Below are positions 22,901 to 49,596 of a stretch of DNA of 64,000 bases, piece by piece. Source of the stretch: Macrostomum lignano (Eukaryota); assembly GCA_002269645.1 (NCBI GenBank), contig NIVC01000250.1, forward strand, positions 172,650 through 236,649. The letters run 5' to 3'. Position numbers and translations under genes: made by a program. Position 1 is the stretch's first letter, and every line of letters starts with the position of its first letter. Under the pieces are notes generated by a model, which saw only the letters and a list, made by a program, of their open reading frames with translations, was not told the origin of the DNA and made no database searches.

Positions 22901-23714
22901 AGGATAACGGCAGCCCAGCAACTGAGGATCTGGGAGGCTGGCCCAGCAACTGAGGATCTTGGAGGCTGGCCCAGCAACTGAGGATCTGAGAGGCTGGCCC
23001 AGCAACTGAGGATCTGGGAGGCTGGCCCAGCAACTGAGGATCTGGGAGGCTGGCCCAGCAACTGAGGATCTGGGAGGCTGGCCCAGCAACTGAGGATCTG
23101 GGAGGCTGGCCCAGCAACTGAGGATCTTGGAGGCTGGCCCAGCAACTGAGGATTTGGGAGGCTGGCCCCAGCAACTGAGGATCTGGGAGGCTGGCCCAGC
23201 AACTGACACTCTGGGAGGCTGGCCCAGCAACTGAGGATCTGGGAGGCTGGCCCAGCAACTGAGGATCTGGGAGGCTGGCCCAGCAACTGACACTCTGGGA
23301 GGCTGGCCCAGCAACTGAGGATCTGGGAGGCTGGCCCAGCAACTGAGGATCTGGGAGGCTGGCCCAGCAACTGAGGATCTGGGAGGCTGGCCCAGCAACT
23401 GAGGATCTGGGAGGCTGGCCCAGCAACTGAGGATCTGGGAGCAGGAAAGCTTATTTATTTTATCAAAATGAAAGTTTCTTTGATTGTGGTCTCTTCCAGG
23501 TCTAGAAGCATCACTAATTTACAATAGTTACCTGTAGCTTAATCTTCTTGCCTTCAACTTCAATGGTTTTAATTTTAAAGTCGATGCCAATAGTAGATAT
23601 AAATGAAGTCTGGAAGGTGTTGTCAACAAATCGAAACAGGATGCAAGTCTTGCCAACACCGGAGTCCCCAATGAGCAGAAGTTTGAACAGAAGGTCGTAT
23701 GATTTTTTAGCCAT
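19961..23714 (-). CDS. RAB10: Rab10-like small GTPase (205 aa, 3 coding exons)
   Basis: Exons 23714-23532, 22809-22600 and 20185-19961, all phase 0. [70 protein letters not shown]-terminal CC prenylation motif. Confidence 0.93.
21221..21258 (+). ncRNA. Minimal type I hammerhead ribozyme motif 1 (core variant CCGACGA)
   Basis: GGC-CCGACGA-A-GAGCC(caga)GGCTC-GAAA-CCG-GTA-GCC: stem I GGC/GCC, stem II, palindromic stem III; U4 is replaced by C. Confidence 0.7.
21308..21345 (+). ncRNA. Minimal type I hammerhead ribozyme motif 2
   Basis: GCC-CTGACGA-A-GAAAT(ataata)ATTTC-GAAA-T-ATC-GGC: intact core, loopless stem III, AUC cleavage triplet. Confidence 0.8.
21485..21812. mobile_element. Old foldback/MITE with ~130-bp imperfect inverted arms
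   Basis: ~21485-21620 matches the reverse complement of ~21677-21812 (e.g. ttgcttttgata / tatcaaaagcaa, tttgatatg / catatcaaaa). Confidence 0.6.
21830..22110 (-). mobile_element. RTE-clade LINE reverse-transcriptase C-terminal remnant
   Basis: Minus-strand translation [13 protein letters not shown]...RRILRVRW...NEDVL...IRR*QLEFFGY, with frameshifts and a stop. Confidence 0.7.
22130..22350 (-). mobile_element. tRNA-derived SINE
   Basis: Minus strand reads gggttcaatgcccgg (B-box-like) followed by gtccttgagcaagacacttta, a common SINE2 body motif; AT-rich tail near 22130. Confidence 0.6.
22912..23441. repeat. 28-bp minisatellite, ~19 copies, Rab10 intron 1
   Basis: Unit ggcccagcaactgaggatctgggaggct. 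Confidence 0.95.
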
Positions 23715-26363: not shown

Positions 26364-29300
26364 TGTTGTATCGTGACTTGAATTGAAGTGTGCAGTGTGG
26401 GGCTGCACCTCAATTGTTATTGGCGCTGAGTTTAGGACTGCTTGCTCTCTCCCCGTCTGCTCTGTCTGTCAATGTACGCTTATGCCTAACCGTCTAATCT
26501 ATTAGCTGATGCTTTACTCGTATCTGCATGTACATCTATGTGCAATGCCAACTACAATAAATAACAACCTCTCGCCCATTTGCGGCTCAAGTTTGGCTAG
26601 CCAGCCACGACACGACAATGGCGTCGCAAGCAGCCAGTGAATTACCTCTCAATGATCCAGCCATGGCTGAGGCCTGGCTGCAAAGTTTTGAAGCACTGTG
26701 CAGGCACAAAAAACTGCAAGATACAAACAAAGAGAAGCAGGTGACAGACCTCTTCCTTGCTCGAGCAGGAATCAATGCAGTCCGATCCGTCTCTATCATG
26801 GCAAAGCCGAAAAACATTGAGGATATGACCTTCAAGGACATCAAGAAAATGATCATCGGGCGACTCCAGCCCAAAAAGAAACTGGTGATTGCAGAGCGCA
26901 CAAGGTTCATGTCCCAGCGGCAGCTGTCAACAGAGTCGGCCCAGCAGTTCGCGGAGCGCTTGAGAGACGCGGCAAAGCACTGTGAGTTTGACAAGCTCAA
27001 CGAAAAAGACTGCAAACAGTCAGCCGAGGATGACTTGATCCAAACACTGCTGATCAGCGGCTTGTGCAACCACAGCCAGCGGACTAAAACACTTGAGCAC
27101 ATTCAGAGCTCTGAGAATCCAGTGACTCTGGACACGTGTCTGCAGTACATCCAGCAGTTAGAGCTCATCCAGAGCTACAGCTCAAGCGACCGATCTGCTG
27201 AAGCCCGAGAGCCTAGCAGAAGCTCCGAGACGGCTGAGAGTTCAACGCCAGTTGCCAGCATCGACAGGAACCGCAATAGCGGTGCTCAGTGCAGGTCGTG
27301 TGGTCTGCAGCACCAGCCAGGCAAATGCCCTGCATTCGGGAAGACCTGTAACAAGTGCCACCGCAGGAACCACTTTGCTGCAGTCTGCAGGAGCAGCGCC
27401 AAGTCCAAGTCAGTTGCACCTGCCCATGAAATCGACACGAGTGAGTGTGAGCAGGCAGGCATCTACACCATCGTCGGCAACGAGAGCGGAAGCGGCAGCA
27501 TAAAAACTGTGCTCATTGAAGGCAAGCCGTTCAAAATGCAGCTCGACTCTGGATCCGGTGCGAGCATCATTCCGATAAACTTCTGGAGGAGCCTCAGTGA
27601 GCCCAAGCTACGAAAGTCCAAGCTGAGACTGCGACAATTTGACGGAACGGTCATCAGAACTAGAGGATGCTTCACGGCGCTCATCGAAGTCGGGAGACAA
27701 ATCGCCTGTGCGGACGTGACGGTCACCGAATGCACAAAGAAGCACGGCCTTATCGGAACAGACGTGCTGGACTTCAAGCTGGACACAGCGACTGTCAATC
27801 AAGTGGAGCGCAGCAGCAAACCGCTAGGCAAGCTCAAAGGTTTCCGTGCTCGGGTCCTGCTCAGGGAGAACGCTCAGCCCAGCTTCTTCGATGCCCGGCC
27901 ACTCCCGATTCATCTCAAGCCGCTGGTGGTGGCTAAGCTGCGGACGATGATCGACGCCGGGATCCTCGAGCCCGTGCCGCCAGGCGGCAGCAGTTGGGCA
28001 TCGCCCATTGTGGTGGTGCGCAAGGCCGACGGAGACCTGAGAATCTGCTCCGACTACAAGATTGGGGTGAACCCGAAGATCTGCTCTGACGCCTACCCAC
28101 TGCCCAACATCGAGCAAGCCTTCAGTGCCCTGGCAGGTATGAAGCACTTCGCAATTGTAGACTTAACAAATGCCTACAACCAGATTGAGCTAGACGAGGC
28201 CTCCAGAGAAATACTCACCATCAACACGCCCCTAGGCCTGCTCAGATGGACGCGCATGCCATACGGGGTGAAGACGGCCAGTGCGCAGTTCCAGGCTGCC
28301 ATGGAGGCAACGGTCGGCGGTGCGGTCAGCAACCTGGTGATCTACCAAGACGACATGTGCGTTGGCGCCACCACAGCGGACGAATTGGACAGCAAAGTCC
28401 GGGACCTGCTGAGAGCGCTTTCTGATGCCGGCATGTCAATCAACGAAAAAAAGTGCGTTTTCCGCAGCACGGAAATCAGTTTCCTTGGCTACCGCATCGC
28501 GGCTGACGGCGTGCGCCCTGATCGGAAGCTGGTGGAGAAAATCCTCGGCGTGAGCACCCCGGCGAGCAAAAAGGAACTCGAATCATTTCTAGGAATGACG
28601 GTATACTACTCGCGCTACATCAAGTCCTACTCGGAGAAGACCGAGCTGCTGACCGAGCTGCGGAGCAAGAAAGTCGCGTTCCATTGGGGACCTCGGCAGC
28701 AGAAAGCATTTGACGAGCTCAAGCAGGCGCTTGCAGCTTCCCCAGTGGTCCGAATCTTCAATGCAAGAAAGCGCACAACTCTGACTACTGACGCTAGTGA
28801 AAAGGCCATAGCAGCAATCCTCTCTCAGGACGAGCACCCAGTGATGTACCTGTCAAGACGGCTGACACCGGCTGAGAGAAATTACTCGAATATCGAGCGA
28901 GAGGCCCTGGCTGTGGTGTGGGCCACTCAGAGAGCCAGACACTTTCTTCTCGGCAGCAAGTTTGTGCTCCAGTGCGATCATCAACCATTGGAGTTCATTT
29001 TTAGTCCGTCTCGGGAGTTTCCAAAGGTCACATCGGCTAGGATCATGCGCTGGGCGTTGCAGCTGTCGGCCTTCGACTACGAAATCTCGTACATCAAGGG
29101 CAGCTGCATCCCGCATGTCGACGCGCTGTCTCGAATTGAATTCAAGGAGGAAGGCGATGGAGACGACTGCCAGGAAAGCTTTGTTCACTGGACAGAGACG
29201 GAGGTGCTCAAGCTGGAGCAGATCAGAGACGCCACTGACAATGACCCGGTGCTCGCCAGCGTCAAGCGCAGGATCCGCAGCAATGCGTGGAACAACTGCT

Positions 29301-30771
29301 CGGCAGCGGAGCGACCGTATAAAGCCGTCCGCCAGCAGCTCTCAGTGGAGAATGGTGTCGTCTGCCTGAGAGACCTGGTGGTCCCGCCTAGCCGGCTGCG
29401 GCAAGACGTGCTGCGAGCGGCTCACGGTGACTCGCACTGCGGTGCCCTAGCGACAAGAAATTGACTCAAGCTGGAAGCCTGGTGGCCGGGTCACTGCGAG
29501 GACGTCGAAAACTTCGTCAAGCAATGCCAGCGATGCGCGGAGATCCGTCCAATGCCTGCCAGAACGTGCCACACCTGGCCGGCTGAAGATGGTCCCTGGA
29601 GACGCGTGCACATGGACCATGCTCACGTTCCCGGCTTCGGCCTGCTGCTCATTGTGGTGGACGCCTTCTCCGGCTGGCCGGAAGCAGTGCCTGTTGCCGA
29701 CAAGAGCGCGACAACGGTCATCAAGGTACTCCGCCTGATTTTCTCCCGCCTGGGTGTGCCGCATACCTTGGTGGCGGACAATGCTCCGGAGTTCCGTGAC
29801 CAGCAGCTGCACGAGTGGCTCAAGAAGATCGGCTGCTCGCCGATGCACTCGCCGCCGTATCATCCGCAGTCAAACGGGTGCGCCGAGCGCATGGTCCAGA
29901 CCGTCAAGAAGGGGCTGCGGGCCTTCGCCGTGCACCAGGGCCGGTTCGACGCGTACCTCGCCAAGCTGCTGCTTAACTACCGGGCCACTCCGCGGGGCGA
30001 CAGGCGTGGCAGTCCATCTGCGCTTATGGGGCGACAGCTGCGAAGTCCGCTGACCCTCCAATTCGACACCGATGCGCCGCTCGTCTACCAGTCGCGGCCA
30101 GGGGGGCCGGCGGAGACCGTCCGCTTTGTGGTACAGGCCGGCCACAACACGGCCGTGGTCACCCGGGACAAGGATGACAGGCCTGTGCTGGCACACTGGG
30201 ATCAGCTGCGCTTGCGTCCGAGTCCAAGCCGGGCGGAAATTACGGACAACACTGACGACAGCGGCCGGGACCCTGACGATGCCGGCCGGAGCCCTGACAA
30301 CGGCGACCGGAACCCTGACGACGGCAACCAGAACCCTGACGAAGGCGGCTGGAACCCTGACGAAGGCAGCCGGAACCCGGAACCTGATAGCCAGCGGCCA
30401 GACGCAGCGGCACCACCGCAGCAGGCCGCTGAAGCTACACCGGAGCCCCGACGAAGCTGCAGGTCGACCAAAGGGGTCGCCCCAGACCGACTGTCTCCTC
30501 GTTGGTGATGAGGGGATGTTGTATCGTGACTTGACTTGAAGTGCGCAGTGTGGGGCTGCACCCCAATTGTTATTGGCGCCGAGTTTAGGACTGCTTGCTC
30601 TCTCCCCGCCTGCTCTGTCTATCAATGTACACTTATGCCTAACCGTCTAATCTATTAGCTGATGCTTATACTCGTATCTGCATGTACATCTATGTGCAAT
30701 GCCAACTACAATAAATAACAACCTCTTGCCCATTTGCGGCTCAAGTTTGGCTAGCCAGCCACAACACGACA
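26364..30771 (+). mobile_element. Full-length Ty3/Gypsy (Mag/K02A2.6-like) LTR retrotransposon, 4408 bp
   Basis: LTRs 26364-26617 and 30517-30771 (TG...CA; 9 substitutions and 1 indel); TSD CAATA; PBS-like TGGCGTCGC at 26619; purine tract before the 3' LTR. Confidence 0.97.
26618..30508 (+). pseudogene. Single gag-pol ORF with one in-frame stop (TGA 29462-29464)
   Basis: Two zinc knuckles (CRSC..H..C, CNKC..H..C), protease LDSGSG, RT YQDD, RNase H TDAS/YSNIEREAL, integrase HHCC plus MDHA/DNAPEF/GCAER. ORFs 26618-29464 and 29552-30508 share one frame. Confidence 0.95.
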
Positions 30772-31833
30772 CAATAAATGATGAAGATTTTGTAGTATTA
30801 CTAGTTCATGTCCTTATTTTGGGAGTTTTGACATGATACTTGTAATTATATCAAAGTAATTGTAACAAAAGATAAGACTTATCTTCTTTGAATCCTTGTT
30901 GCATCTGAAGACTAGGCTAGGCCTAATACAAGATTATTATCTTAAGATTAGGCTTATATTTTTAGTATATATAAGTAGAGCCATGTCTTATTCAAAGAAA
31001 TGGTTATAAAGAAACAAATCTCTTTTTTTCTTTCTAAGTGGCAATGTAGCATAATAGCTGCTTGGCAATGGTTATCTGGTGATCTTTTAGTATAATGCCT
31101 AGATGGCAAGGTATCTATTATATCTAACAAGTAAAAACTTTCTACATGTCAATATTTTTTGCTAAAAATAAAATATAATCATATATATACAATTCCCCTT
31201 CTCTAATTTACTGGCCATGCAATTTATTTTTTGATTAAAAATGTAACTTACCTATAAAAAACATTAAAGTAAAAATCTATGTAGTTTTAGATAAATGGTA
31301 AAAGTAACTAGGCCTTTGGCTGTCTTTTTAAAGCCAAATGTCTTGTTATCTAATCTAATCTAATCTAAATCTAATAAATCTAAGTACTAATATATATATA
31401 GGGCCTATTCTTTAAAGTAGGAATTTTTGCAACTTACCCCAAGTCTACCAGAATTTATAGTGGCTAGATTGGCTAGCAATGCAGTTGCACATATATGAAA
31501 AATAAAATATAAATTTTATATTATTCAGTCAAAAAATAATAACTAAGACTATTTTAGATTGCTACTAAAAGGGCCTATTTTTCTATCAGATAAATATCTT
31601 AAAAATTATAGGGCCCATACATGCGCAACAGTCGGCCGAGTCGGCCGATCCGGCCGACCGATTTGGCGGCCAACCAAGTAAGTCGCAAAATTGATTAACC
31701 GCCAAAAAAAACGAAAAAACAAAAGACGAAAAAGGGGAAAGGAAAAGGAAAAAATGAGAAAAAGGGAGCAAAGAGAAAGAGAAAAACACAAAAAGAGTTG
31801 TAAGTGCTGTAAGTTGCAGCACTGAAGACAAGG

Positions 31834-33401
31834 TAAGTCGCACCGAGGGCAAGCTAAGTCGCACCGAGGGCAAGCTAAGTCGCAGCAGGACCGAGCTAAG
31901 TCGCACCGAGGGCAAGCTAAGTCGCAGCAGGACCGAGCTAAGTCGCACCGAGGGCGAACTAAGTCGCACCGAGCGAGAGCTAAGTCGCACCGAGGGCGAG
32001 CTAAGTCGCACCGAGGGCAAAATAAGTCGCACCGAGCGAGAGCTAAGTCGCACTAAGTCGCAGCAGGACCGAGCTAAGTCGCACCGAGGGCGAGCTAAGT
32101 CGCAGCAGGACCGAGCTAAGTCGCACCGAGGGCGAACTAAGTCGCACCGAGCGAGAGCTAAGTCGCACTAAGTCGCAGCAGGACCGAGCTAAGTCGCACC
32201 GAGCGAGAGCTAAGTCGCACCGAGGGCGAGCTAAGTCGCACCGAGGGCAAAATAAGTCGCACCGAGCGAGAGCTAAGTCGCACTAAGTCGCAGCAGGACC
32301 GAGCTAAGTCGCACCGAGGGCGAGCTAAGTCGCAGCAGGACCGAGCTAAGTCGCACCGAGGGCGAACTAAGTCGCACCGAGCGAGAGCTAAGTCGCACTA
32401 AGTCGCAGCAGGACCAAGCTAAGTCGCACCGAGGGCGAGCTAAGTTGCAGCAGGACCGAGCTAAGTCGCACCGAGGGCGAACTAAGTCGCACCGAGCGAG
32501 AGCTAAGTCGCACTGAGGGCGAGCTAAGTCGCAGCAGGACCGAGCTAAGTCGCACCGAGGGCGAACTAAGTCGCACCGAGCGAGAGCTAAGTCGCACTAA
32601 GTCGCAGCAGGACCAAGCTAAGTCGCACCGAGGGCGAGCTAAGTTGCAGCAGGACCGAGCTAAGTTGCACCGAGGGCGAACTAAGTCGCACCGAGCGAGA
32701 GCTAAGTCGCACTGAGGGCGAGCTATGTCGCAGCAGGACCGAGCTAAGTCGCACTAAGGGCGAGCTAAGTCGCACCGAGGGCAAAATAAGTCGCACCGAG
32801 CGAGAGCTAAGTCGCACTAAGTCGCAGCAGGACCGAGCTAAGTCGCACCGAGGGCGAACTAAGTCGCACCGAGCGAGAGCTAAGTCGCACTAAGTCGCAG
32901 CAGGACCGAGCTAAGTCGCACCGAGGGCGAGCTAAGTCGCACCGAGCGAGAGCTAAGTCGCACTAAGTCGCAGCAGGACCGAGCTAAGTCGCACCGAGGG
33001 CGAGCTAAGTCGCACCGAGCGAGAGCTAAGTCGCACCGAGGGCGAGCTAAGTCGCAGCAGGACCGAGCTAAGTCGCATCGAGGGCGAACTAAGTCGCACC
33101 GAGCGAGAGCTAAGTCGCACTGAGGGCGAGCTATGTCGCAGCAGGACCGAGCTAAGTCGCACTAAGGGCGAGCTAAGTCGCACCGAGGGCAAAATAAGTC
33201 GCACCGAGCGAGAGCTAAGTCGCACTAAGTCGCAGCAGGACCGAGCTAAGTCGCACCGAGGGCGAGCTAAGTCGCACCGAGGGCGAGCTAAGTCGCACCG
33301 AGCGAGAGCTAAGTCGCACTGAGGGCGAGCTAAGTCGCAGCAGGACCGAGTAAGTCGCAGCAGGGCCGAGGTAAGTCGCAGCAGGACTGAGTTAAGTCGC
33401 A
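31834..33401. repeat. Subterminal array of TAAGTCGCA motifs (~75 units, mostly 21 bp, several spacer types)
   Basis: Invariant TAAGTCGCA followed by ccgagggcgagc, gcaggaccgagc, ccgagcgagagc or a single c; the same 9-mer occurs in the element ends and its MITEs. Confidence 0.95.
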
Positions 33402-33605
33402 GAGCATCTTTAGGATTATTAGGATAGGATTAGTTTAGGATGAATTTAATGTATCACTTACTAGGGTGTAGGCTACGTGTGCATTAACGCATCAATTTGA
33501 AAAATTAAGAATTACGAAGCCAGAAATGGCTAAGGAATAGAAATAGGGATAGAATAACTTATAAGCAGTAATTTTTCAGCCCTATTACAATTGCAAATCA
33601 TACTT

Positions 33606-36600
33606 TTAATAATATTTAATTAGCAAATTAAAACTGCAAGATTCTAACGGTCTTATATATGAACTTAGAAGAACTGTAGTCTGACCAGAGATTGTCCTTT
33701 CTGTAGCGCGTTCTGAAGCATCTGCATCTCTAGAGTCTGAATCAGAAAGATGGTCCTCTGTTTCAGATTCAGAGCTGTCATCTTCCATTCCAAACCGTCT
33801 AGCAAGAGGTATGATTCTCGAACTGTATGTAAAGACAGTATGTAATGTTTCAGCATTAGGCAATAACACTGGGTTGAGCACATTAAATATTGAGTAGTCA
33901 TCCTCAGGAAAATAATTACGCAGCTGATCAATTATGCTATCAATGATTCGACTGCGAATCTCATCCAGTGCTGGATAAGCTCCCATGTCAACAACACTGC
34001 CACGTCCACTAGCATCAAATAATCTATTTCTTAGAGATCTGTCTGCAGCAGAACCTGGTTGCTTCAACTCAAACCTCTCTGTTGGATCGCTGCTTCCAGG
34101 GCCGGAAGGACAAGCAAAGTTAGAATAAGATAGGTCTCTTGTGTGACATCCTGAATGGTATTCCAGCTGCGGATATCCATCTGCAGTTCCCAAAACTCGA
34201 CGACACTTGCAGGAAGCCAAAAAGTCCACAATGCGAGGACCATTGTTCGTTTTTAAGGTTTCTAGTGAATGGATAAGGTTAGTGTGGCGTTCTTGCAAGC
34301 CAATAAATGTACCCTTGGCTCTTTGAAACTGCAAGGACTCAAATTCCAGTAATTTTAGAATGTCCATGAGAAATAGATGTAATGAATAATACCGGACATT
34401 TTGCAATGTTTTCAATAATCCAGAGGCAGTTGCTTTACTTTCGTCATCAAAGCCTGAGGAAGGTGATTTGATATTTTCTAAATTTGTCAGAAGCAAGTAG
34501 TACGACTTTCGAATCACATCAAGAGCAGACACTTCCGATGCAACCCACCTGATGCGATATATTCTTTTTAATTCATAGAAAACCAAGTTGAGTGCTTCCG
34601 AAGTTTGTGCCAAAGATGCCTTACGTTTAACAGCGTGGCTCATATAAAATTTGTGTAGAGAATTTATATTCTTATCGAGATGTTGCATAAATGGGAAGAT
34701 TTCAAAGGCATGATAGATTGAAAGTTCTAACTTATGCGCTGCACAATGGTGCTGAAAAAATTGTTTGCTAGCCCAAGGCCTCAGTTGACTTATTAATCCC
34801 ACTCGACTTCCTGTCATTACGGATGCACCATCAGTTGTCACCCCCAATAGCCTTCGTTTGATTTCATCTTCTAGCTTGTCATCCGAAAATAAACGGATGA
34901 GAAGTTCATAAATGCTTCGTCCAGTCTCTACTTCAGTCAGACGTTTAAACCGATAAAAAACATCAAATGTTGGCTGTTTTCAAGAACTCTGAAGTATATC
35001 ATGACGTAGCTGTTTGAATGAATATCAGACGTTGTATCTAGTACAATAGAAATCGGAAGATTGTCAGCACTTTTAATGTAATTCACAAATGTCCGATGCA
35101 TTGTATTACTGATTGATTCCACCATTGCTGCGGCACTTTTGCGATGCTTATGATGGCTCCCCATATCCAACCCATTTTTTACTTGTAAATCAATCATATT
35201 TGGATGAGCACTGAATGGAATATTAGATTTGACTTCGGCATAAACTGTTGTCAAAACTCGGGCTGTTATTTCATCTCGTTTAGTTTTAGCTAGTCTAGCG
35301 GCCTCATTCATCTGTTTGAGTTGCTTTGCAAGAACTGAAGTATGTTTTTCCTTCATCCACTTTATGGCGTCACTGAAGTGTATTTGATGAATGTTCCTGT
35401 AGTTTTCTTCGTACGCTATCTTTTGCATGACCTTTGGGAATGTAGCCTTGTTCTGTTGCAAAAGTTAACTTACGTTGGCTCTCTAGATTTGTCTCCTTTT
35501 TCTTATGTGCATTCAAAAATTTTCTGCAGATCCGACATTGTATTCCAGATCTTGATAGATCTTCGGTGTTTTGAACATATTGAAACCATGTCTTCATTTC
35601 TTGTGACACAAATTTTCTTGAAAATGATCTGCAATGGTCAAATTAGAGAATATTTTGGGATTTGGACTATTTGTGAGTATCTAAAAGCAATATGCTAATA
35701 AGTGCAATACACAATACACTATACATTAATTTACAGTTCGTCAGTTTCCATTTACTTACTGTGACTGGTGCATCTCCAAAGAATGTAACCACTCCTCTCG
35801 AAAACCAGATGTATCCTCCCAGTCCTTTTTAGGGAAAACTTCAATATTTTCGCCCATCATAGAGGAAGACGAGGGCTTTGATGCTGAAGTGGCTAGACAT
35901 GCGTCTGCAGATGTGCTTATGCATGGTATTTTTTTTGCGATGGCCCTGCTTCTGCAGTATTTACTTGTACTATTTCAACATCACCTGAACCCCTTGAGTC
36001 GCTCGAATCTAAATCAACAATAGGACTTTGGCAAAGTGATCGTTTCGTTGATTGTCTTTGAATATTTACTTGCCTAATAATTTCCACTTGTAGTTTGCTT
36101 GTTTGCTGGTCATTCTCCAACAACTCTCTTCTTTCCTGTACATTTGCAGCAGAGCAAAAATTAGAAGTTTCTGCAGCAGCAGTTTGAACAGCATGATCTC
36201 GATTAGCTGCTATTTGCTCTGAAAATTCATAGGACCTGGCCAATTCACTACGGTGTGAGCTTTCAGAACATGGAGCTGGAGCAGGAGCTAGTCGCATTTC
36301 GATTCTTTCTGTTGCTGATGAAGCAGATGCTAATGCTGAGTCTGCCAATGTACCTGCTTCTCTTGAAGGTGTATTTATGATGGCTTCAATATTGTCCTCT
36401 AAAATCCAATGAGCACCTGAGCAGTCATTTTCTCTACCTGGAGTCAACTGTCCAAGTTTCCACCTTGTAAAAAGCAAAGGCTTTCGTAACTCACTGCTGG
36501 ATTCAGGGCACCGGTTTATTGAATAGTCCTCATGACCAAGTTCATCCCATTCTCTTGCTGGCTTTAAGATGTAGTTGGGCTTGTCTCTTAGCCTACGATA

Positions 36601-37386
36601 AATGGACTAAAAAAATGTGCACCTGTTATTTTGTGTACTTCGTGCATAGATGATCATGTCATGCACATTGTTCCTAATAATTTCAGCTAATGAGTTATCA
36701 ATGATAATTTTATCTTCATAAACAGGTCTTCTTTGTGTTGCATGCATTTTAGCTAGTCGCAGTTTTCCAATGCTACTGGCAGTTGTGGAACTTGAACTGT
36801 CCGATTCTGATCTAGAAAAGTCTCGTTGATACAAGAGAATAATGGCCATAGCACTTTTACCATTCCCATTCTTTAATGCATTTGGTTCTGTTGGAATTGT
36901 CTTACTAGCAGACTTGAAAAAATCAATGATGGATGACTGCGATGATCCACTAGGAGCGGAACTTGGCAGCCCATGTCTAGTTTTTCCCTGATACCCAATA
37001 GATGTATCGGTAAAAAACATATCTGCTGCTTCCTGCTTCTCTTTTGATGCAATAACAAAGAAACTGCTGTCCGTTTTGAAGCCCGAGGACCGATAGAAGT
37101 CAGCAGAAAATGAAACCACAGGTCGTCTAAAATCGCCGCTATATTCTTGAACTCCAATCAGAAGAAAATCACGGAGTCTCACTGGCACTGATCCTAATAG
37201 CATTGCAGTTGTGGAACAAACTTTCTTCAGCTCAATGAACTCTGAAAATTCTTGAGATCCAATATTAGGCTCATCAGTATTTAACTCATTTATAACAATT
37301 GAGCACTCACTCTCAGCTAGAATACCATTGATAGCTAGGATGCCACTTAGAATCAGTAGGCAAAGACAACTAAGGCTGTACATCAT
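33606..37386 (-). pseudogene. Signal peptide + lamin-tail-like domain + TTF-type zinc finger + hAT (ZNF862/KIAA1586-like) transposase, disrupted
   Basis: Exon 37387-35760 (in-frame TAG at 36607-36609; indel in A-run 35929-35936), intron 35759-35629, exon 35628-33606 (frameshifts near 35390 and 34973). Motifs CRIC..H..H, VLDTTSD, TTDGASVM, HCAAHKLEL, IRWVAS. No S.ER.FS dimerisation motif seen. Confidence 0.8.
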
Positions 37387-37830
37387 TCTGTGAAAGATTA
37401 AGTCGAGTATATGATTTTGGTGATAAAATAAAATTGATTTATGAGTATTACTATATAAATAAAACATTTAAAAGCCCTTACCTTTACCAATTCATGTACA
37501 GAAAGTAAGTGTAAATACAACCAATTGCCTTGGTAGTTTAGTTATATGCTCGTATCAGATGCAGGCAGACAGCATAGGCTGCCAAGGTGCTATAAGTTAA
37601 GGTTAACTTTCACTATTTGGCTTTACAGACTGCTTTTATCGCTGCATGCATTGACTTAGCCTTAGCTTGTGCCATCATACTCATACAGCTATATATACAT
37701 ATGTATCTCTGCCACTCCCCACTTTTGCAACCTTACACTGTACAATCATGCCTAAAACACTCCGTGTCAAGTGTACTGTTCTAGTGCCACATGGGGTACA
37801 AATACGATTAGGAATGACAAGAGTCAAAAC

Positions 37831-38117
37831 CATACATGCACAATAGTTGGCCGATATGGACGACTGATTTGGCGGCCAACCAAGGTAAGTTGCAAAAATG
37901 CCCACCCAAATAAATACCAAAGTAGTATTAAGTAGCTGACGAAGCATTTTGCCTTAATAAAGACAGTTATAGTTACTCCTGCCGTTTACCCAAAGTTGCG
38001 TTAATTTTGCTTTCAGGTTTTTTTCATGTAAGTCGCATTTTTGGCCGAAAACTACGTCGCATTTTTGTTAAAACTAAGTCGCACGGCCGACCAAATTTTG
38101 GAGGTTGCGCATGTATG
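37831..38117. mobile_element. MITE-equivalent unit forming the right end of the hAT element
   Basis: Starts CATACATGCACAA (second left-type TIR) and aligns along its length with the MITEs at 41203 and 42281; has no TSD of its own. Confidence 0.85.
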
Positions 38118-38238
38118 ATAGGGCCTAAATTTTAAAATCTCACTTTAGCCTATAAGCCTAGTCTTTGTAGTTAGGTCTACTATGACATAATATCATTGTT
38201 AGGCTTAGACAGTAAGTGATAAGTCTTAGTCTATTATA

Positions 38239-40779: not shown

Positions 40780-41650
40780 AGAATCATAGAAGTGTCATAT
40801 AAACATTCATAGAAGTGTCATGTAAATAATCATAGTAGCTCCATGTAAACAATCATAGAAATGTCATGTAAAAAATCATAGAATTGTCATAAAACAATCA
40901 TAAAAGCATCATAAAAAATCATAGAATTGTCATATAAAGAATCATAAAAGTGTCATGTAAACAATCATAAAAGCTTTAAATGAACAATTATAAAAGCATC
41001 ATATAGGCCTAAAAATCATAGAAGTGTCATGTAAAGAATCAGAAGTGTCATGTAAACAATCATAGAAGTGTCATATAAACAATCAGAAGCATTATGTAAA
41101 AAATCATAGAAGTGTCATGTAAAGAATCATAGAAGTGTCATGTAAGCAATCATAGAAATGTCATATAAAAAATCATAGAGGTATCATATAAAAATCTAAG
41201 AACATATATGCGCAACACTCGGCCGAGTCGGCCGATGTGGCCGACCGATTTGGCGGCCAACCAAGGAAGTCGCAAAAATGCCCACCCAAAAAACACCAGA
41301 GTAGTAGCACTAAGTAGCTGACGAGGCATTTTGGCTTAATAAGAGTTATAGTTACTCCTGCCGTTTACCCAAGTAGGTTTTTTACATGTAAGTTGCATTT
41401 TTGGCCAAAAACTACGTCGCATTTTTGTTAAAACTAAGTCGCACGGCCGACCGAATTTTGGAGTTTGCGCATGTATGTCTAAGAAGCATAAAAAAATCAG
41501 AAGTGTTATGTAAAGAATCATAGAAGCCTCATGTAAAGAATCATAGAAGTGTCATGTAAGCAATAATAGAAGCTGCATGTAAACCATCATAGAAATATCA
41601 TGTAAAAAATCATAAGCATCATTAAAAAATCATAGTAGCGCAATGGAATA
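40780..41650. repeat. Degenerate ~23-bp AT-rich tandem repeat (aatcatagaagtgtcatgtaaaa), interrupted by a MITE
   Basis: Recurrent catagaagtgtcatgtaaa; decayed copies continue to ~43900. Confidence 0.8.
41203..41477. mobile_element. hAT MITE of the 31616-38117 family
   Basis: TIRs CATATATGCGCAAC / TTTGCGCATGTATG; perfect TSD TCTAAGAA. Confidence 0.93.
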
Positions 41651-42280: not shown

Positions 42281-42576
42281 CATACATGCGCAACAGTCGG
42301 CTGAGTCGGCCGATCTGGCCGACCAATTTGACGGCTAACCAAGGAAGTTGCAAAAATGCCGACCCAAAAAAACCAAAGTAGTAGTACTAAGTAGCTGACG
42401 AGGCAATTTGACTTAATAAGACAGTCATAGTTACTCCTGCCGTTTACCCAAAGTTGCGTTAATTTTGCGTTAGCGTTTTTTTACATGTAAGTCGCATTTT
42501 TGGCCAAAAACTACGTCGCATTTTTGTTAAAACTAAGTCGCATGGCCGACCAAATTTTGGAGGTTGCACATATATG
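42281..42576. mobile_element. hAT MITE of the 31616-38117 family
   Basis: TIRs CATACATGCGCAAC / GTTGCACATATATG; TSD CCCTATGA / CCCTATAA (7 of 8). Confidence 0.9.
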
Positions 42577-45364
42577 CCCTATAATGTCAAGACTTGCAGG
42601 GAATTACAATAATACTATAGTGCTATAATAACTCTTGGGGAGAATTATTGAAATGTCAATGCTTTAGGGTTAGGATTAAGGTTAGAGTAGGGTTAGGGTT
42701 AGGTTGACAGATTTTTTAAGATTTCAAGGCTTATGGGAGGCATCACTGAGATGTCAATAGGGAAAGTTGATATTTTAAGGCTTGTGGGAGGAATTGCTAA
42801 CATGTCAATGCTTACAAGGGACTACTAAGATATATTGCAAAGAGATGCTACATGTACTTTATTAAAAAACTTATACTGCATTTTTTAGCTCCCAATGGGG
42901 GCGCTAATTGCTAGTCCCATATACTAAAAACACACCTATTATATATTAACAACAATATGATTATATAGAAGTAATTTTGGCAAAAATGGCCTAACCAATT
43001 TTCATGAGACTTTGACTATTCAATCAGAAAATTTTCTAAGATAGTAATGTGTTGTTGCTAGGAAATTGCTCAATGCTAAAGGGATTAAATATTTAAAACA
43101 AGCTTTATTGCAAGTATCAAGCAGATTCTTAAAGTTAAAACATATTGTTAAAATGCTAGAGAAAAAACTAACATATAGAATTTAGATTCTGATTAAGATT
43201 GTATCATAGCTGAATTGTGATTCTAGCTTGAATTGTGGCAATGTGAAATGCCAAAATATGTTCCACATAATGTGGAAACATAACATGAGACTTAATTTAG
43301 ATTATGCAACCACATTGTTAACTTTAATTGAAACTGATATTCACTGAATAAGAAATTGATTATGTCATAACTGCTTTGTGTGACTTTTACTCTAATAGAG
43401 TATGTAATATAATGTAGTAATGAGTAAGTATACCTAGGTGTCTAGGTGTCATGTATACCTAGAAGAAGCATCATGTAAAATATCACAAAGTATCATCATG
43501 TATAAAATAAAATAATTGTCATAAAATATAAAAGAAGCATCATATACAAAATAAACAAAATTTCATATAAAACAAAAAAGCATTAGTGTTACTAGGTTTC
43601 TCTTTTGTGATATGGATAGTATAGTGTCTTGACTTTCAAAATTGCATCCTCAAATTAGACATTATGCTTGAATGCAATTTTGCATCCTAGTGCCAGTGAA
43701 AAAACCATAGGCTATATACTAGGGATGGTATGTAATATCCTGACTTTTCAAATCATATCCTAAAGTTTGACCTTTGATACATTTTGCATGTTAGCACCAG
43801 TGAAAAAACCTAGATCATAAAAGTAATAACAAAAGAATCATCATGTTAAACAGAAGAAACATCATATAAAACATGAAAAAGCTCATATAAAACATCAAAG
43901 AAGTTATTATATGAAAATAATAGTTATTTCAGACATGTAAAAGAAGAAATCATATAGTCTTTGTAAGAATTGCTATTGCTAAGATGTCAAGGCTTAGTTT
44001 GGAATTATTGAGATGTTAAGGCTTATGGGGAGAATTGCTGATCATGAGTAACAAGGTATATAGGGGGATTTCTTAGATGTCAAGGCTTAGGGGGATAGCT
44101 GAGATAGCTGAGATAATAATTAACTTATTACAATTTATAAGTAATTGCTGAGTTATAAAGGCGAAAGTACTTTTTCGATTTTAAAACTGCAATAAACCCC
44201 TATTTTTTGTATTATAGTTTTTTTAAAGGCTTTTCTTTAAAAATACAACTTTGTTTTTTATCACCCCATTAAAGTCAGATGAATATTTTTTTATTTTTTT
44301 TTGAAAATGTATTTCTTTCTTCTTTCTAATTAATATTTGCTTTTAATTCTAAGCAATTGGATTGCACAGTTATTCATTTGCAAAAAACCCAACATTTTAT
44401 TAAAATTTGCCATTTGTATTCATATTGGCAAGTCATGGGATCCCTGGGTTTTTTAGAAAGTTTTTTTGAGAAATACGAATTGTAATATATAAAGAGCCTT
44501 AAAGTTGAGCTTAAAGCCAGTGAATATAGGTTTACAATACACTTTTAAACACAAAATGTTCCTAGAGCAGTCAACTTTCATATCTAAAAAGTTTCTTGTG
44601 TCTATGACCATTTTTAAAGGTGAATTTGATATTAAGAGTAGGTTGATTGCTAAAACAAAAGTTTTATGGTCTTTCTCACTTTCAAATACAGCAAGCATGT
44701 CATCAACATAGCATTTGTAAAACTTTGGTGTACAAGGCAGTTTCAGGCTTCAGCCATTTACAGACTCCTGGTAAGTCATACAGAGATCAGCTAATGTGGG
44801 AGCTAAGGGGTTACCTTTACCTTTATGCTATGTGTATATGATTTTCATTTTTATGTGTATCAAAATATATATTTACATATATAAAATACATATTCAGTTT
44901 TTATACCTAGGAGATATTTGCTTTTTAATAGCAATATATAGTTCTTTGTAATTTTATTAACATATTATAGCCAAAAATTGTTTAAATTTGCTACACAAAA
45001 TTTTTGAATTAATATTAACTTTGGTAAAGTTTTTTCTTACTATGTAAATAGTAGTGATATATATACTATTTTATAATTTAACAATCCAACTTACTTTGTA
45101 CTTTAAAAAACTTCACATGTCTTATATTATCTGAAATTGCCCATTATTTCTTGAATAGTTGAATTACAAGTTATAACAAAAATTACCTCCAAAAATTGCA
45201 TGCATACTGCGCGCTGCATTGTGCAGCCGCTAGCAGGCACTGCAAAGCCTTAGGTTCTAACTTGATTAATCAGACTTTTGAGTCCTAAGCAGACTGTCAA
45301 AGAACTTTAGAGCTCAAAGAAGTGTGATTCTACAGTTAGTGAATATTTAATTATTAGCAACAAA

Positions 45365-48300
45365 ATGGGCTGCTGCTTTTCAAAGCACGCGGCAGAGCAA
45401 CCCGGCCGGAGGTACATTGAAGATCCGCAGCAGCTGCAGCAGCAGCAGCAACAGCAGCAACTGGCGCCTGTTGCACAGTGGAACAACCACATGGGCCATG
45501 CTGACGCGATACCAGGCCACATGCAGCCGCAGAGGCCGGGTAACAAATTCATGGGGCCATATCCGCAGCAGCCCATCGGCCGGCCCAACCAGCCAATGCC
45601 GATGGTTGAGCCGCAGCCTCCGCCACAGCAGCGCATCTTGGTCAGGGCGCTCTACAACTACAATGCCCAGAATCCTGACGATCTGGACTTTCGCAAAGAC
45701 GACCTAATGGAGGTTTTAGGCGACACCTCCGAGCCCTGGTGGTACGCCAGGCACCAGCGCAGCTCCAAGGCCGGCTACATACCGTCTAACTATGTGCTCA
45801 TTGACGACGGCAAGCCGACTTCGCTCAGCTCCTGGTTCGAAATCAGCCGCAGAGATGCTGACAGGTTTGTGTGGTCTGCAGTGCCGCTTGGTTTTGCTTT
45901 GGCCACTGGTTGGTATACCCTAACCCCTGACACTCCAATCCCTGACACCCTAACCCCTGACACTCTAATCCCTGACACCCTAACCCCTGACACTCCAATC
46001 CCTGACACCCTAACCCCTGACACTCCAATCCCTGACACTTTAACCCCTGACACTCCAATCCCTGACACCCTAACCCCTGACACTCCAATCCCTGACACCT
46101 TAACCCCTGACACTCCAATCCCTGACACCCTAACCCATGACACTCCAATCCCTGACACCCTAACCCCTAACACCAATCCCTGACACCCTAACCCATGACA
46201 CTCCAATCCCTGACACCCTAACCCATGACACTCCAATCCCTGACACCCTAACCCCTGACACTCCAATCCCTGACACCCTAACCCATGACACTCCAATCCC
46301 TGACACCCTAACCCCTGACACTCCAATCCCTGACACCCTAACCCATGACACTCCAATCCCTGACACCCTAACCCATGACACTCCAATCCCTGACACCCTA
46401 ACCCATGACACTCCAATCCCTGACACCCTAACCCATGACACTCCAATCCCTGACACCCTAACCCCTGACACTCCAATCCCTGACACCCTAACCCATGACA
46501 CTCTAATCCCTGACACCCTAACCCCTGACACTCCAATCCCTTAACACCCTAACCCCTGACACTCTAATCCCTGACACTGAAATCCTTTACACCCCAACCC
46601 CTGTCCCTGACACCCTAACTTCTGACACTTGAATACTTGATACCCAAACCCCTGGCCCCTGACACTTAAATCTTTGACACAACAACCCCTGACAGCTTAC
46701 TTCCGACACTTCAATCCCTGACACCACAACTCCTGACACCCCAACCTTTGACAGCCTAACTTCTGACATTCCAATCCCTGACATCCCATTCTCTGACACC
46801 CTAACTCCTGACAATTCGATCTTTGACTCCCCAACCCGTGCCACTGACACATTAATCCCTGATACCCCAATCCCCGGCCGCCAAAGCAGTTGTCTGGTAC
46901 AAGAAATGTCAAACCTGTGAGATGCAGGTGGCAAATCAGTAGTTGGGAGGGGGCGCGATAATCCCCCCTCCAGCTAAGCCCCTGCCCTGACAGCCGCATC
47001 CCTGTCTATCCAAGCCTTTCGATAAGTGCCACCCAGTTTCAACTGATTCCTGAGTTTGATATTGAAATTCTATTAATATTTGATTTACAAGAAGTTATTT
47101 TTGGTTTAGACCAATTAGTTAAATTTTGTATCAGCTGAAAATAGAATTCGCTATAAAATTGCCAAAAAACATCGTCAAAAGTAGAACTTTTAAATCTAGA
47201 ATTAGAAATTTGTTTAACAAAAATTGATTGAACTCCTGATAAAGGGTGATGGTAAGGTGGGGACAATCCAATTAGAAAATGACCAGATGAAAGGAAAGAG
47301 ATGACAGCGCTAAACAGAGGCCCAGACAGCTGGCTGTCGTACGATTGAGGACCAGCCCCTGAAGCACCGGGAGTGTACATGCGTGTGTACTACAGAATGG
47401 GCAGAATTGCCGTTAGCCCTGCGAATATTGTTATTAAGCGTCAATGTGAGTAGCTTTAACCGCATGTCACCTTCTCCCCAGGCACCTGCTGATGCCTGGC
47501 AACCCATCGGGCACGTACATCCTGCGGCCCAGCTCGTCCGGTCACTACGCTCTCAGCGTTCGAGTGAAAGATCAAACAAAGGAGAATAATTTCATGGTTA
47601 AGCACTACAAGATCAAAAACATGGACAATGGCGGATTCTACATATCGCCGAGAATCACCTTCAACTCCATGCAGGACCTGCTTAGTCATTATCAGGAGCG
47701 CACCGACGGCCTGTGCTGCAAGCTCACCATCCCGTGTCCCCGCGCCTACAAACCGCCTGTGCAGTTCCGCGACATCGAGGTGAACCGCGATTGCATCCAG
47801 CTGCTGCAGAAACTTGGCAACGGCTCCTTCGGCGAAGTGTTCCTAGGCAAATGGAACAACAGCGTTGAGGTGGCTGTGAAGACCATGAAGCCGAACACTA
47901 TGGAAGCTCAGAAATTCATCTCGGAGGCGCAGATCTTGCATCGATTGAATCACCCGAGAATTGTGCAGATTCTCGGTGTTTGCACCACGGGTGAGTACTG
48001 CCCCAGTTCTTAATCGCTAGATCCTCAAAATTTCATGCCTAGAGATCCTATTCTTCTTAGAATCATAATTGTAGTCCATTTTTAAGAATAGTTCAGATAC
48101 CACCCGGTTGTATTTGTTAGAATGGCCGAGTTGATCTCATTTAAAAAACTAGACTATTTAAACTAATTTCTTAAAATGGCCGAGTTGACCTCACTTCTAA
48201 AAATAGACAATTTGGACCAATTTCTTAGAATGACCGAGTTAATTCCTTTTCTTAGAATGACCAAATTGATCTTATTTCTTAGAATAACCAAATTGATCGC

Positions 48301-49596
48301 ATTTCTTAGAATAACCAAGTTGATCTCATTTCTTAAATAACCAAGTTGATCTCATTTCTTAGAATGACCAAGTTGATCTCATTTCTTAGAATGACCAAAT
48401 TGATCTTATTTCTTAGAATGACCAAATTGATCTTATTTCTTAGAATAACCAAGTTGATCTCATTTCTTAGAATGACCAAATTGATCTTATTTCTTAGAAT
48501 TACCAAATTGATCTTATTTCTTAGAATAACCGAGTTGATCTCATTTCTTAGAATGACCAAATTGATCTTATTTCTTAGAATTACCAAATTGATCTTATTT
48601 CTTAGAATAACCGAGTTGATCTCATTTCTTAGAATGACCAAATTGATCTTATTTCTTAGAATTACCAAATTGATCTTATTTCTTAGAATAACCGAGTTGA
48701 TCTCATTTCTTAGAATGACCAAATTGATCTTATTTCTTAGAATGACCAAATTAATCGCATTTCCTGAAACGGCCAACTTGATCCTACTTTTTGGAATCGC
48801 CAAGATAATTCTATTTCTTAAAAAAACTCAAACATTTTCTGAGAATATTATTTAAATTCCAATTCCTAGAAACACATTCACAATTCATTTAAGTTCGATT
48901 TCTTAGAATCTTCTTCAGATCCCATTCCGCCAAATTTTTCCCATTCTAAGAAATCAAAAACTATTTGAACTGGCAGGTGAGCCAATCTACATCATCACTG
49001 AGCTGATGGTGAACGGAGCACTGCTAGACTATCTGCGCAAAGACAACGGATTGAATCTGAAATTCGAGAATCTCATCGACATGATGGCCCAAATATCCGA
49101 CGGCATGGCCTATTTGGAGAGTTTGAACTTCGTGCACAGAGATCTTCGGGCCGCCAATATTCTGGTGGGCGACAATAACTGGGTGAAGGTGGCGGACTTC
49201 GGGCTCGCCAGGATGACCGCTGAAGACGACATCTACACGGCCGACGAGGGCGCCAAGTTCCCCATCAAGTGGACAGCGCCTGAGGCTGCTCAGAACCGAA
49301 TGTTCTCAGTCAAATCCGACGTCTGGTCGTTCGGCGTGCTCATGTGGGAGATTGTCACCTACGGCCGCGCGCCCTACGTCGGCATGGCCAACCGCCAGGT
49401 GCTAGAAGAAGTGTCCAAAGGCTACCGCATGCCGAACCCGCACAGCGGACACGTGTACTGCGACAACAACATCTACCAGCTCATGCTGGAGTGCTGGAGC
49501 GCCAATCCTGACAGCCGGCCGACATTCGCCTATCTGAAGGACGTCTTTGAGAACTATAACGTTGCCACGGAGATTCAGTACGTGGATAAGCGTTGA
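45365..49596 (+). CDS. Src-family non-receptor tyrosine kinase (Src42A/FRK-like), 542 aa, 3 coding exons
   Basis: Exons 45365-45864, 47482-47990 and 48977-49596 (phases 2,1). MGCC acylation start, Gln/Pro-rich unique region, SH3 ALYNY..WW..GYIPSNYV, SH2 YILRPS, GNGSFG, VAVK, HRDLRAAN, DFG, DDIY, KFPIKWTAPE, C-tail EIQY. Confidence 0.95.
45917..46870. repeat. 30-bp (2x15) minisatellite with CCCTAACCC-like core, Src intron 1
   Basis: Unit cctaacccctgacactccaatccctgacac; decays after ~46570. Confidence 0.95.
48220..48760. repeat. 27-bp minisatellite, Src intron 2
   Basis: Unit atttcttagaatgaccaaattgatctt. Confidence 0.95.

Follow-up and report, generated by a model that had tools for sequence, protein, structure and literature searches.

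Why should a transposase, whose work is on chromosomal DNA, begin with what looks like a signal for secretion and a domain of an extracellular type? The question is raised by a hAT transposable element that lies in a 64,000-nucleotide stretch of Macrostomum lignano DNA (assembly GCA_002269645.1, contig NIVC01000250.1, positions 172,650 to 236,649 of the forward strand), here called the window, in whose coordinates positions are given. The prevailing view of cut-and-paste transposases in eukaryotes is that they work in the nucleus, and the accessory modules known for them are DNA-binding fingers and oligomerisation domains. An earlier, sequence-only reading of the window had nevertheless proposed that the transposase of this element is fused to a hydrophobic leader and a lamin-tail-like domain (LTD). 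The answer favoured here, to which we would give a probability of about three in four, is that the hAT element of the window is a dead, non-autonomous member of a young family with many copies, resembling the Buster and ZBED5-FAM200 transposases, and that the transposase of this family combines leader, LTD and hAT parts.

What would such a protein look like? Intact family members are predicted to make one transposase of ~1,337 amino acids (aa) from two coding exons. The first of these, exon A, would encode the leader, a divergent LTD of ~300 aa with conserved cysteines, and a linker containing a cluster that resembles a nuclear localisation signal (NLS) together with a WEDTxxF motif. The second, exon B, would supply a zinc-finger-like motif, a DDE/RNase-H-like core and the hAT C-terminal dimerisation domain. 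Within the genome searched (764 Mb, labelled G000), four copies (C366, C698, C1051 and C1052) have an exon A whose frame stays open over 570 aa and ends ...WEDTSGFREEWLHSLEMHQSQ at a CA/GTAAGT donor (the slash marks the splice site), while an exon B without stops over 799 aa is present in C4213. The intact 799-aa open reading frame (ORF) matches the Pfam family Dimer_Tnp_hAT (PF05699) at 3.5e-7, with 30.4 bits against a cut-off of 21.4. In subfamilies that show both the N-terminal and the transposase parts, the two lie on the same contig and strand (e.g. C3487, C12, C926, C551, C3564, C1809 and C5074), and in the divergent copy C3487, which may be intact, they are spaced as in the window, with open frames of 543 and 775 aa.

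The same union is found well beyond this genome. As suggested in the sequence-only reading, the N-terminal region (345 aa) was used to gather homologues, here with phmmer against 1.84 billion representative proteins, and 172 cluster representatives were returned at E<=1e-3. Among the best 150 of these relatives 38 unite the N-terminal and the transposase part in a single polypeptide, as do 22 of the 23 that are at least 700 aa long, the exception being an amphioxus LTD-repeat protein. For instance, in P0013 (1,147 aa) and P0075 (1,139 aa) a hydrophobic leader, LTD, zinc finger and Pfam-positive hAT C-terminal domain (hATC) are all found within one ORF, and P0019 (1,131 aa), on which Dimer_Tnp_hAT is likewise matched, has the same architecture but a short N-terminus that lacks strong hydrophobicity. 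The open paralogue exons, the intron that joins them in frame and these two-part homologues together place the N-terminal domain and the transposase in the same gene, as had been proposed. The intronless full-length homologues, in which leader, LTD and transposase form a single ORF, argue against the further proposal of a separate secreted passenger. The suggestion that similar N-termini occur on 'KIAA1586-like' proteins of other invertebrates is borne out in part, in that similar N-termini are present on transposase-length proteins of other organisms. The homologues are almost all nameless ORFs from public-read assemblies; a precomputed match to PF27073 (FAM200-ZBED5 RNase-like) on the homologous contig L064 is consistent with a placement near KIAA1586-like proteins. 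With a composite full-length protein as query the homologous-protein search gave no matches, and word-indexed searches gave 5-9 relatives.

One member of this eukaryotic transposon family, the 619-aa P0161, stands in NCBI as 'MAG: hypothetical protein [Cyanophyceae cyanobacterium]', a label referring to a metagenome-assembled genome (MAG) into which a eukaryotic contig has probably been mis-binned.

The window copy preserves the outline of this gene on the minus strand (Table 1). The leader, the INELN..EFIEL..TPG.ENDC domain, an in-frame TAG and a GT-AG phase-2 intron of 131 nt are located where the sequence-only reading placed them. The ORF at 37467-36607 begins MMYSLSCLCLLILSGILAINGILAESECSIVINELNTDEPNIGSQEFSEFIELK and reads MMYSLSCLCLLILSGILAINGILAESECSIVINELNTDEP...EFIELK, and beyond the TAG the frame continues unchanged through SINRCPESS...WKLGQLTPGRENDCSGAHWILE into a low-complexity region. 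The 131-nt intron carries upstream frame 0 into downstream frame 2, as in all paralogues, and the spliced junction, ..EMHQSQ/SFSRKFVSQEMKTWFQY...CRICRKF, aligns to homologues that are uninterrupted at this point, e.g. ...YQGRYISMDLISPARKTWLNY...CRFCAKY. The position of the intron and its GTAAGT donor are kept in L064 and L066, which are ~69% identical in DNA. Downstream, transposase-like motifs (LDTTSD, TTDGASVM, CAAHKLEL and RWVASE) are readable in the window ORFs. A putative intron in the 5' untranslated region (UTR), also noted earlier, has donor and acceptor signals that are both kept, despite indels in between, in L061, a 92%-identical element from another sample.

Can the window copy itself make the fused protein? 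The sequence-only reading held that correction of a single indel in an A-run would be sufficient, but comparison with the intact paralogues reveals five defects: a G>T change at 36609 that converts GAG to TAG, the loss of 1 nt from an A-run near 35932, a 2-nt deletion near 35376, the loss of 1 nt from a T-run near 34958, and a 506-bp deletion after 33681 that has taken away the final 146 codons and with them the hAT dimerisation domain. With a premature stop, three frameshifts and this deletion the window copy is unable to make the fused protein, and it is to the family, not to this copy, that the fusion belongs. A Pfam scan of the window ORFs returned no matches because the copy has lost its hATC domain, which only the intact paralogues revealed. 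The RNase-H-like DDE core gave no local Pfam match in either window or paralogue ORFs, typical motifs being readable in the former, and sequence matches in the PDB to the Hermes transposase are weak and confined to the C-terminal region.

The element does belong to the hAT superfamily, as the perfect terminal inverted repeats (TIRs) of 14 bp and the 8-bp target-site duplication (TSD) that bound the element are joined by the Dimer_Tnp_hAT matches on the paralogue and the homologues. When the window was searched for the TIR at up to 2 mismatches, 9 matches were found against 0.42 expected by chance, and three paralogous copies have perfect 8-bp TSDs of their own, each of differing sequence. The Buster hATs (TcBuster and AeBuster1) and their domesticated relatives ZBED5, FAM200A/B, KIAA1586 and ZBED8/9 likewise have 8-bp TSDs and short TIRs, and the hAT dimerisation domain at the C-terminus is shared too. 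Their zinc finger ahead of an RNase-H-like DDE core that contains an insertion domain would also have its counterpart in the window family. The difference would be the N-terminal part of ~540 aa, comprising leader, LTD and linker, that the window family adds. To our knowledge, and in the literature searched, no such part has been described for Buster-clade proteins.

What, then, is the domain that follows the leader? When 38 family members are compared with Pfam, LTD ranks first, albeit below threshold, with 4 of the 38 matched and a best E of 0.0011. The phmmer search also reached a protein of the amphioxus Branchiostoma floridae (LOC118427361 / C3ZWX4), named 'LTD domain-containing protein', in which Pfam LTD is matched at 7.5e-95 over eight stretches. 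Profile and structure comparisons, also suggested in the sequence-only reading, gave a strong result with hhalign, where the transposon-domain profile aligned with six amphioxus LTD repeats at a probability of 99.4% and E 5.6e-21, with 180 aligned columns and all 181 columns spanned. The alignment extends over query residues 30-322 and takes in INELN.D.P..EFIEL, FVIGS, NG..A..LL, VD..VY, SxxRC and TPG.ENDC; the transposon domain is longer by two insertions. The lamin-tail-like domain had thus been correctly recognised, in terms of profile homology, though it lies below the Pfam cut-off. Given the 38-sequence alignment, AlphaFold2 (AF2) produced a confident model (pLDDT 82, pTM 0.83) with a helix at residues 2-25 followed by a strand-rich domain; on a single sequence the pLDDT was 31.6. 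Residues that are invariant or nearly so across the 38 sequences include E34, E52, D243, Y247, C256, C293, P316, N320 and C322, and dN/dS over the LTD is 0.18 against a 96%-identical relative and 0.15 against a 64%-identical one. These comparisons show the leader-plus-LTD module to be an old part of the transposase clade that has been kept by selection.

The amphioxus protein is instructive in its layout. Much as the hydrophobic leader does in the transposase, a signal peptide abuts the first module, INELNAD..EYIEL..FVIGS..NG.DA..LY..LVD..YS..SRC..TPG..N.C, and the amphioxus repeats and the transposon module are homologous end to end with a Cys pair common to both. The amphioxus protein differs in having nine tandem modules, which are followed by a transmembrane (TM) segment and a tail, and in having no transposase, whereas the single module of the transposon is enlarged by two large insertions (~aa 131-170 and ~190-225) and has another two cysteines that are conserved. 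In view of the shared arrangement of hydrophobic N-terminus and abutting module, we infer that the transposon most likely acquired the module by capture of the 5' exon of a gene encoding a cell-surface protein with LTD repeats. A Pfam LTD search of the genome gave three sub-threshold places only, and so offers no candidate donor gene there.

The leader of the window copy has a maximum 10-residue hydropathy of 2.93 and a run of 24 consecutive uncharged residues. Among 72 homologues that start with Met, 57 (79%) have a 10-residue window with a hydropathy of at least 2.0 before the INE motif, the median maximum being 2.8, while only 2% of control windows of equal length from the same proteins reach 2.0 (Mann-Whitney p = 2.6e-34). 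No TM-length segment (19 aa with a mean hydropathy of at least 1.6 at more than one start position) was found outside the leader, apart from isolated single windows in P0013 and P0019. The leaders range from ~12 to 70 aa and have no common sequence, only an n-h-c-like layout; the AF2 confidence over the first 20 leader residues is ~84-90 in pLDDT. In 23 of 33 homologues the WEDTxxF motif is preceded, at a distance of ~15 residues, by a basic cluster (e.g. RRKRRLS or PKKKRV) that by its pattern resembles a classical NLS.

Several observations weigh against a transposase with a signal peptide and an LTD. None of the genome loci examined has both exons open. The window protein does not match Pfam LTD (PF00932), and most family members fall below the gathering threshold; a Foldseek comparison of the AF2 model with the PDB produced weak Ig-like (antibody V-domain) hits and none at E<=0.001, and a PDB sequence search with the N-terminal part returned low-complexity noise (the tRNA-splicing endonuclease Sen34, E 0.3). 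A strong hydrophobic window is missing from 12 of the 72 homologue N-termini, some of which may be truncated ORF calls. The leader is called signal-peptide-like on the basis of hydropathy, variable length and position, and an endoplasmic reticulum (ER) signal on a nuclear enzyme is paradoxical, such that the role of the leader could be another.

Could the leader then be a membrane anchor or a structural helix, acting as a nuclear-envelope tether or packing on the LTD, with the LTD itself as a nuclear module for binding chromatin or DNA? Transposases act on nuclear DNA, the NLS-like motif is conserved, AF2 confidently predicts a helix at residues 2-25, and the Ig-fold tail of lamins has been reported to bind DNA and chromatin partners. 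However, the leader varies in length and has nothing conserved except hydrophobicity. Basic residues tend to precede it and small or acidic ones to follow, an n-h-c pattern typical of cleavable signals but not of a packed helix or of an anchor facing the cytosol, and the LTD has its closest relative in an extracellular repeat that contains the same invariant Cys pair. On balance this explanation appears unlikely, although it retains some force.

A second explanation takes the locus for a two-gene element, in which exon A is an independent secreted LTD passenger that ends at the TAG, or at a TAA reached by intron retention, and exon B is a separate transposase. In L064 and L066 as well as in the window family, retention of the phase-2 GTAAGT intron does place a TAA in frame straight away, so that an unspliced mRNA would give a 543-aa product of leader, LTD and linker. 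A stop falls at the same codon in two lineages, as TAG in the window family and as TAA in L064, and 12 copies bearing the TAG have transposed. Yet in the full-length homologues leader, LTD, zinc finger and transposase form one uninterrupted ORF, to the interior of which exon B aligns right after the acceptor. The TAG lies in the middle of the LTD, ahead of the invariant SINRCP...TPG.ENDC part, and because of this the passenger would be half a domain. The stop is moreover placed at a T-run of variable length, and the copies with TAG and TAA bear other disabling lesions. Two genes are thus an improbable reading of the element.

Least credible of all is that the N-terminal ORF is a chance or annotation artefact, a decayed host-gene fragment recently picked up and functionless for the transposon, for although the window copy is broken and its protein has no Pfam match, the 172 homologous cluster representatives, the motif residues invariant in 38 sequences, the linkage of module and transposase in 50-74%-identical subfamilies within the genome and in other organisms, and the dN/dS of 0.15-0.18 make this reading next to untenable.

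The stop within the LTD also has a history of its own. The TAG is present in 12 examined copies with differing flanks, and the T-run before it is T5, T6 or T7 depending on the copy, where intact paralogues read GAG. A programmed stop with readthrough at this TAG was considered and rejected in view of its position at the end of the T-run, the T5/T6/T7 length variation and the other lesions in the same copies. In another organism, L064:1103-1105 is an in-frame TAA at the very codon of the window TAG, after T7, in an element ~60% identical in protein; that copy bears other stops too. The recurrent stop is read as a probable mutational hot spot at the end of a homopolymer, though the recurrence is striking.

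How, then, has a broken copy come to be so widespread? At least 40 copies in the genome are 97-100% identical in amino acid sequence, beside older subfamilies at 50-74%. Flanks differ from copy to copy and each of three copies is enclosed by a perfect 8-bp TSD of its own, which identifies the copies as products of transposition. At least 10 independently inserted loci have an identical truncated exon-B ORF of 457 aa, the 3' deletion included, and therefore a non-autonomous derivative has been amplified, presumably in trans. Two loci, G000:C698:~2290 and G000:C1051:~37225, have in common a 5' flank, CCAGTGCA, and an upstream 169-aa ORF, and are probably haplotigs or a segmental duplication rather than separate insertions.

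The element would be expected to move by ordinary hAT cut-and-paste, with the transposase of an autonomous copy binding the TGCGACTTA subterminal repeats and the TIRs and mobilising dead copies in trans. The TAAGTCGCA motif occurs 78 times inside the element, always in the same orientation, and 81 times in the entire window, and the subterminal repeats that carry it are probable transposase binding sites. The most likely role for the LTD would be that of an accessory module for binding by the transposase. The leader most likely does target the protein to the ER, in which event only part of the protein, or an alternative isoform, would enter the nucleus by way of the NLS-like motif, and the outcome could be dual targeting or self-limitation of the transposase. 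In a bolder version, the leader directs the transposase, or an exon-A-only LTD isoform arising when the intron is retained, to the secretory pathway and the NLS-like motif takes it to the nucleus of the same cell or, after uptake, of another, allowing a transposase to act across cell boundaries (e.g. from soma to germline) or its dose to be limited at the ER; this is speculative and would be a long shot.

There are functional parallels for parts of this scheme. Proteins such as PTHrP have both a signal peptide and an NLS, and thus the same conflict of targeting signals, and intron retention in P-element transposase gives isoforms that are truncated and non-catalytic, to which the predicted retained-intron TAA is analogous here; neither parallel involves a sequence relationship. 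Bacterial secreted nucleases with an N-terminal LTD (of the ExeM/NucH type, and Vibrio Xds) similarly join a signal peptide, an LTD and a DNA-cutting enzyme. These nucleases differ, however, in their endonuclease/exonuclease/phosphatase fold, in their extracellular function and in not being mobile, and no homology is implied beyond the LTD.

Table 1 Positions of the hAT element and of its parts in the window (31,608 to 38,125)
Feature	Position	Strand	Details
Whole hAT element, non-autonomous	31616..38117	minus-strand gene	6,502 bp; similarity to other copies starts at 38117-38123 in ~30 copies
TSD ATAGGGCC, left	31608..31615		perfect 8 bp, identical to right copy
TSD ATAGGGCC, right	38118..38125		perfect 8 bp
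TIR CATACATGCGCAAC, 3' end in gene orientation	31616-31629	+	exact match, perfect 14 bp
TIR CATACATGCGCAAC, 5' end in gene orientation	38104-38117	-	perfect 14 bp
Subterminal array of ~21-bp repeats carrying TAAGTCGCA	31834..33405	+	1.57 kb, 3' end; Tandem Repeats Finder (TRF)
Subterminal repeats with TAAGTCGCA, 5' end	38029..38083	+	2.4 units; TRF
Putative 5'-UTR intron	37388..37481	-	94 nt; AAG/GTAAGG ... TTTCACAG/
Start codon and signal-peptide-like leader MMYSLSCLCLLILSGILAINGILAESE, aa 1-27	37306..37386	-	hydropathy
Divergent LTD module, aa 28-325, broken by TAG	36412..37305	-	hhalign, AF2
In-frame TAG (GAG, Glu260, in intact paralogues)	36607..36609	-	at the end of a T-run
Low-complexity linker ending in conserved WEDTSGF..W motif	35760..36411	-	broken by 1-nt A-run deletion, 35929-35936
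Intron	35629..35759	-	131 nt, GT-AG, phase 2
Transposase exon, with CxxC...Hx5H zinc-finger-like motif and DDE/RNase-H-like core	33606..35628	-	

The surroundings of the element hold further traces of hAT ends. Two miniature inverted-repeat transposable elements (MITEs) bear its TIR, one at 41203-41477 (275 bp) with a perfect 8-bp TSD, TCTAAGAA, and one at 42281-42576 (296 bp) with a TSD that agrees at 7 of 8 positions (CCCTATGA / CCCTATAA), and a solo TIR-like end (31484-31497) is separated from the element by 118 bp. The pol region of a long-terminal-repeat (LTR) retrotransposon (26561-30508, plus strand), with aspartyl protease, reverse transcriptase (RT), RNase H and integrase, is found ~1.1 kb away from the 3' end of the hAT element, and in it a single stop splits two long ORFs. 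The window also contains two tandem Src-type genes (SH3-SH2-tyrosine kinase), both on the plus strand, at 45311-49596, where the gene is split by introns, and at 57924-59252, where SH3, SH2 and half of the kinase domain lie within one exon. The retrotransposon pol and the Src-type genes mark the genome as one of animal type. Long minisatellite-like arrays that are open in several frames are found at 6047-7157, 22859-23518, 45790-46548 and 55656-56791 (an example of the unit is HWVIWSLGHLVIGSFG), and two large ORFs of 540 and 677 aa at 3-4217 on the minus strand, without a Pfam match, are probably exons of a single gene.

What does the finding mean for transposons of this kind? MITEs and dead copies of the hAT family are abundant in the genome, and the first exon is at present listed as orphan 'hypothetical proteins' of 300-400 aa, one of them in the MAG labelled cyanobacterial. 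Nothing relevant in the full-text literature searched links a lamin tail domain, a signal peptide or secretion to hAT elements, the Buster clade or transposases, and this is apparently a hAT clade with a previously unreported N-terminal architecture. In many lineages, and under purifying selection, the clade keeps an ER-signal-like leader and an extracellular-type LTD on its catalytic protein, and thereby raises the paradox of a signal peptide and an NLS on one transposase. It would represent a new hAT domain architecture and a clear case of a transposon that has captured, and retained, a host exon.

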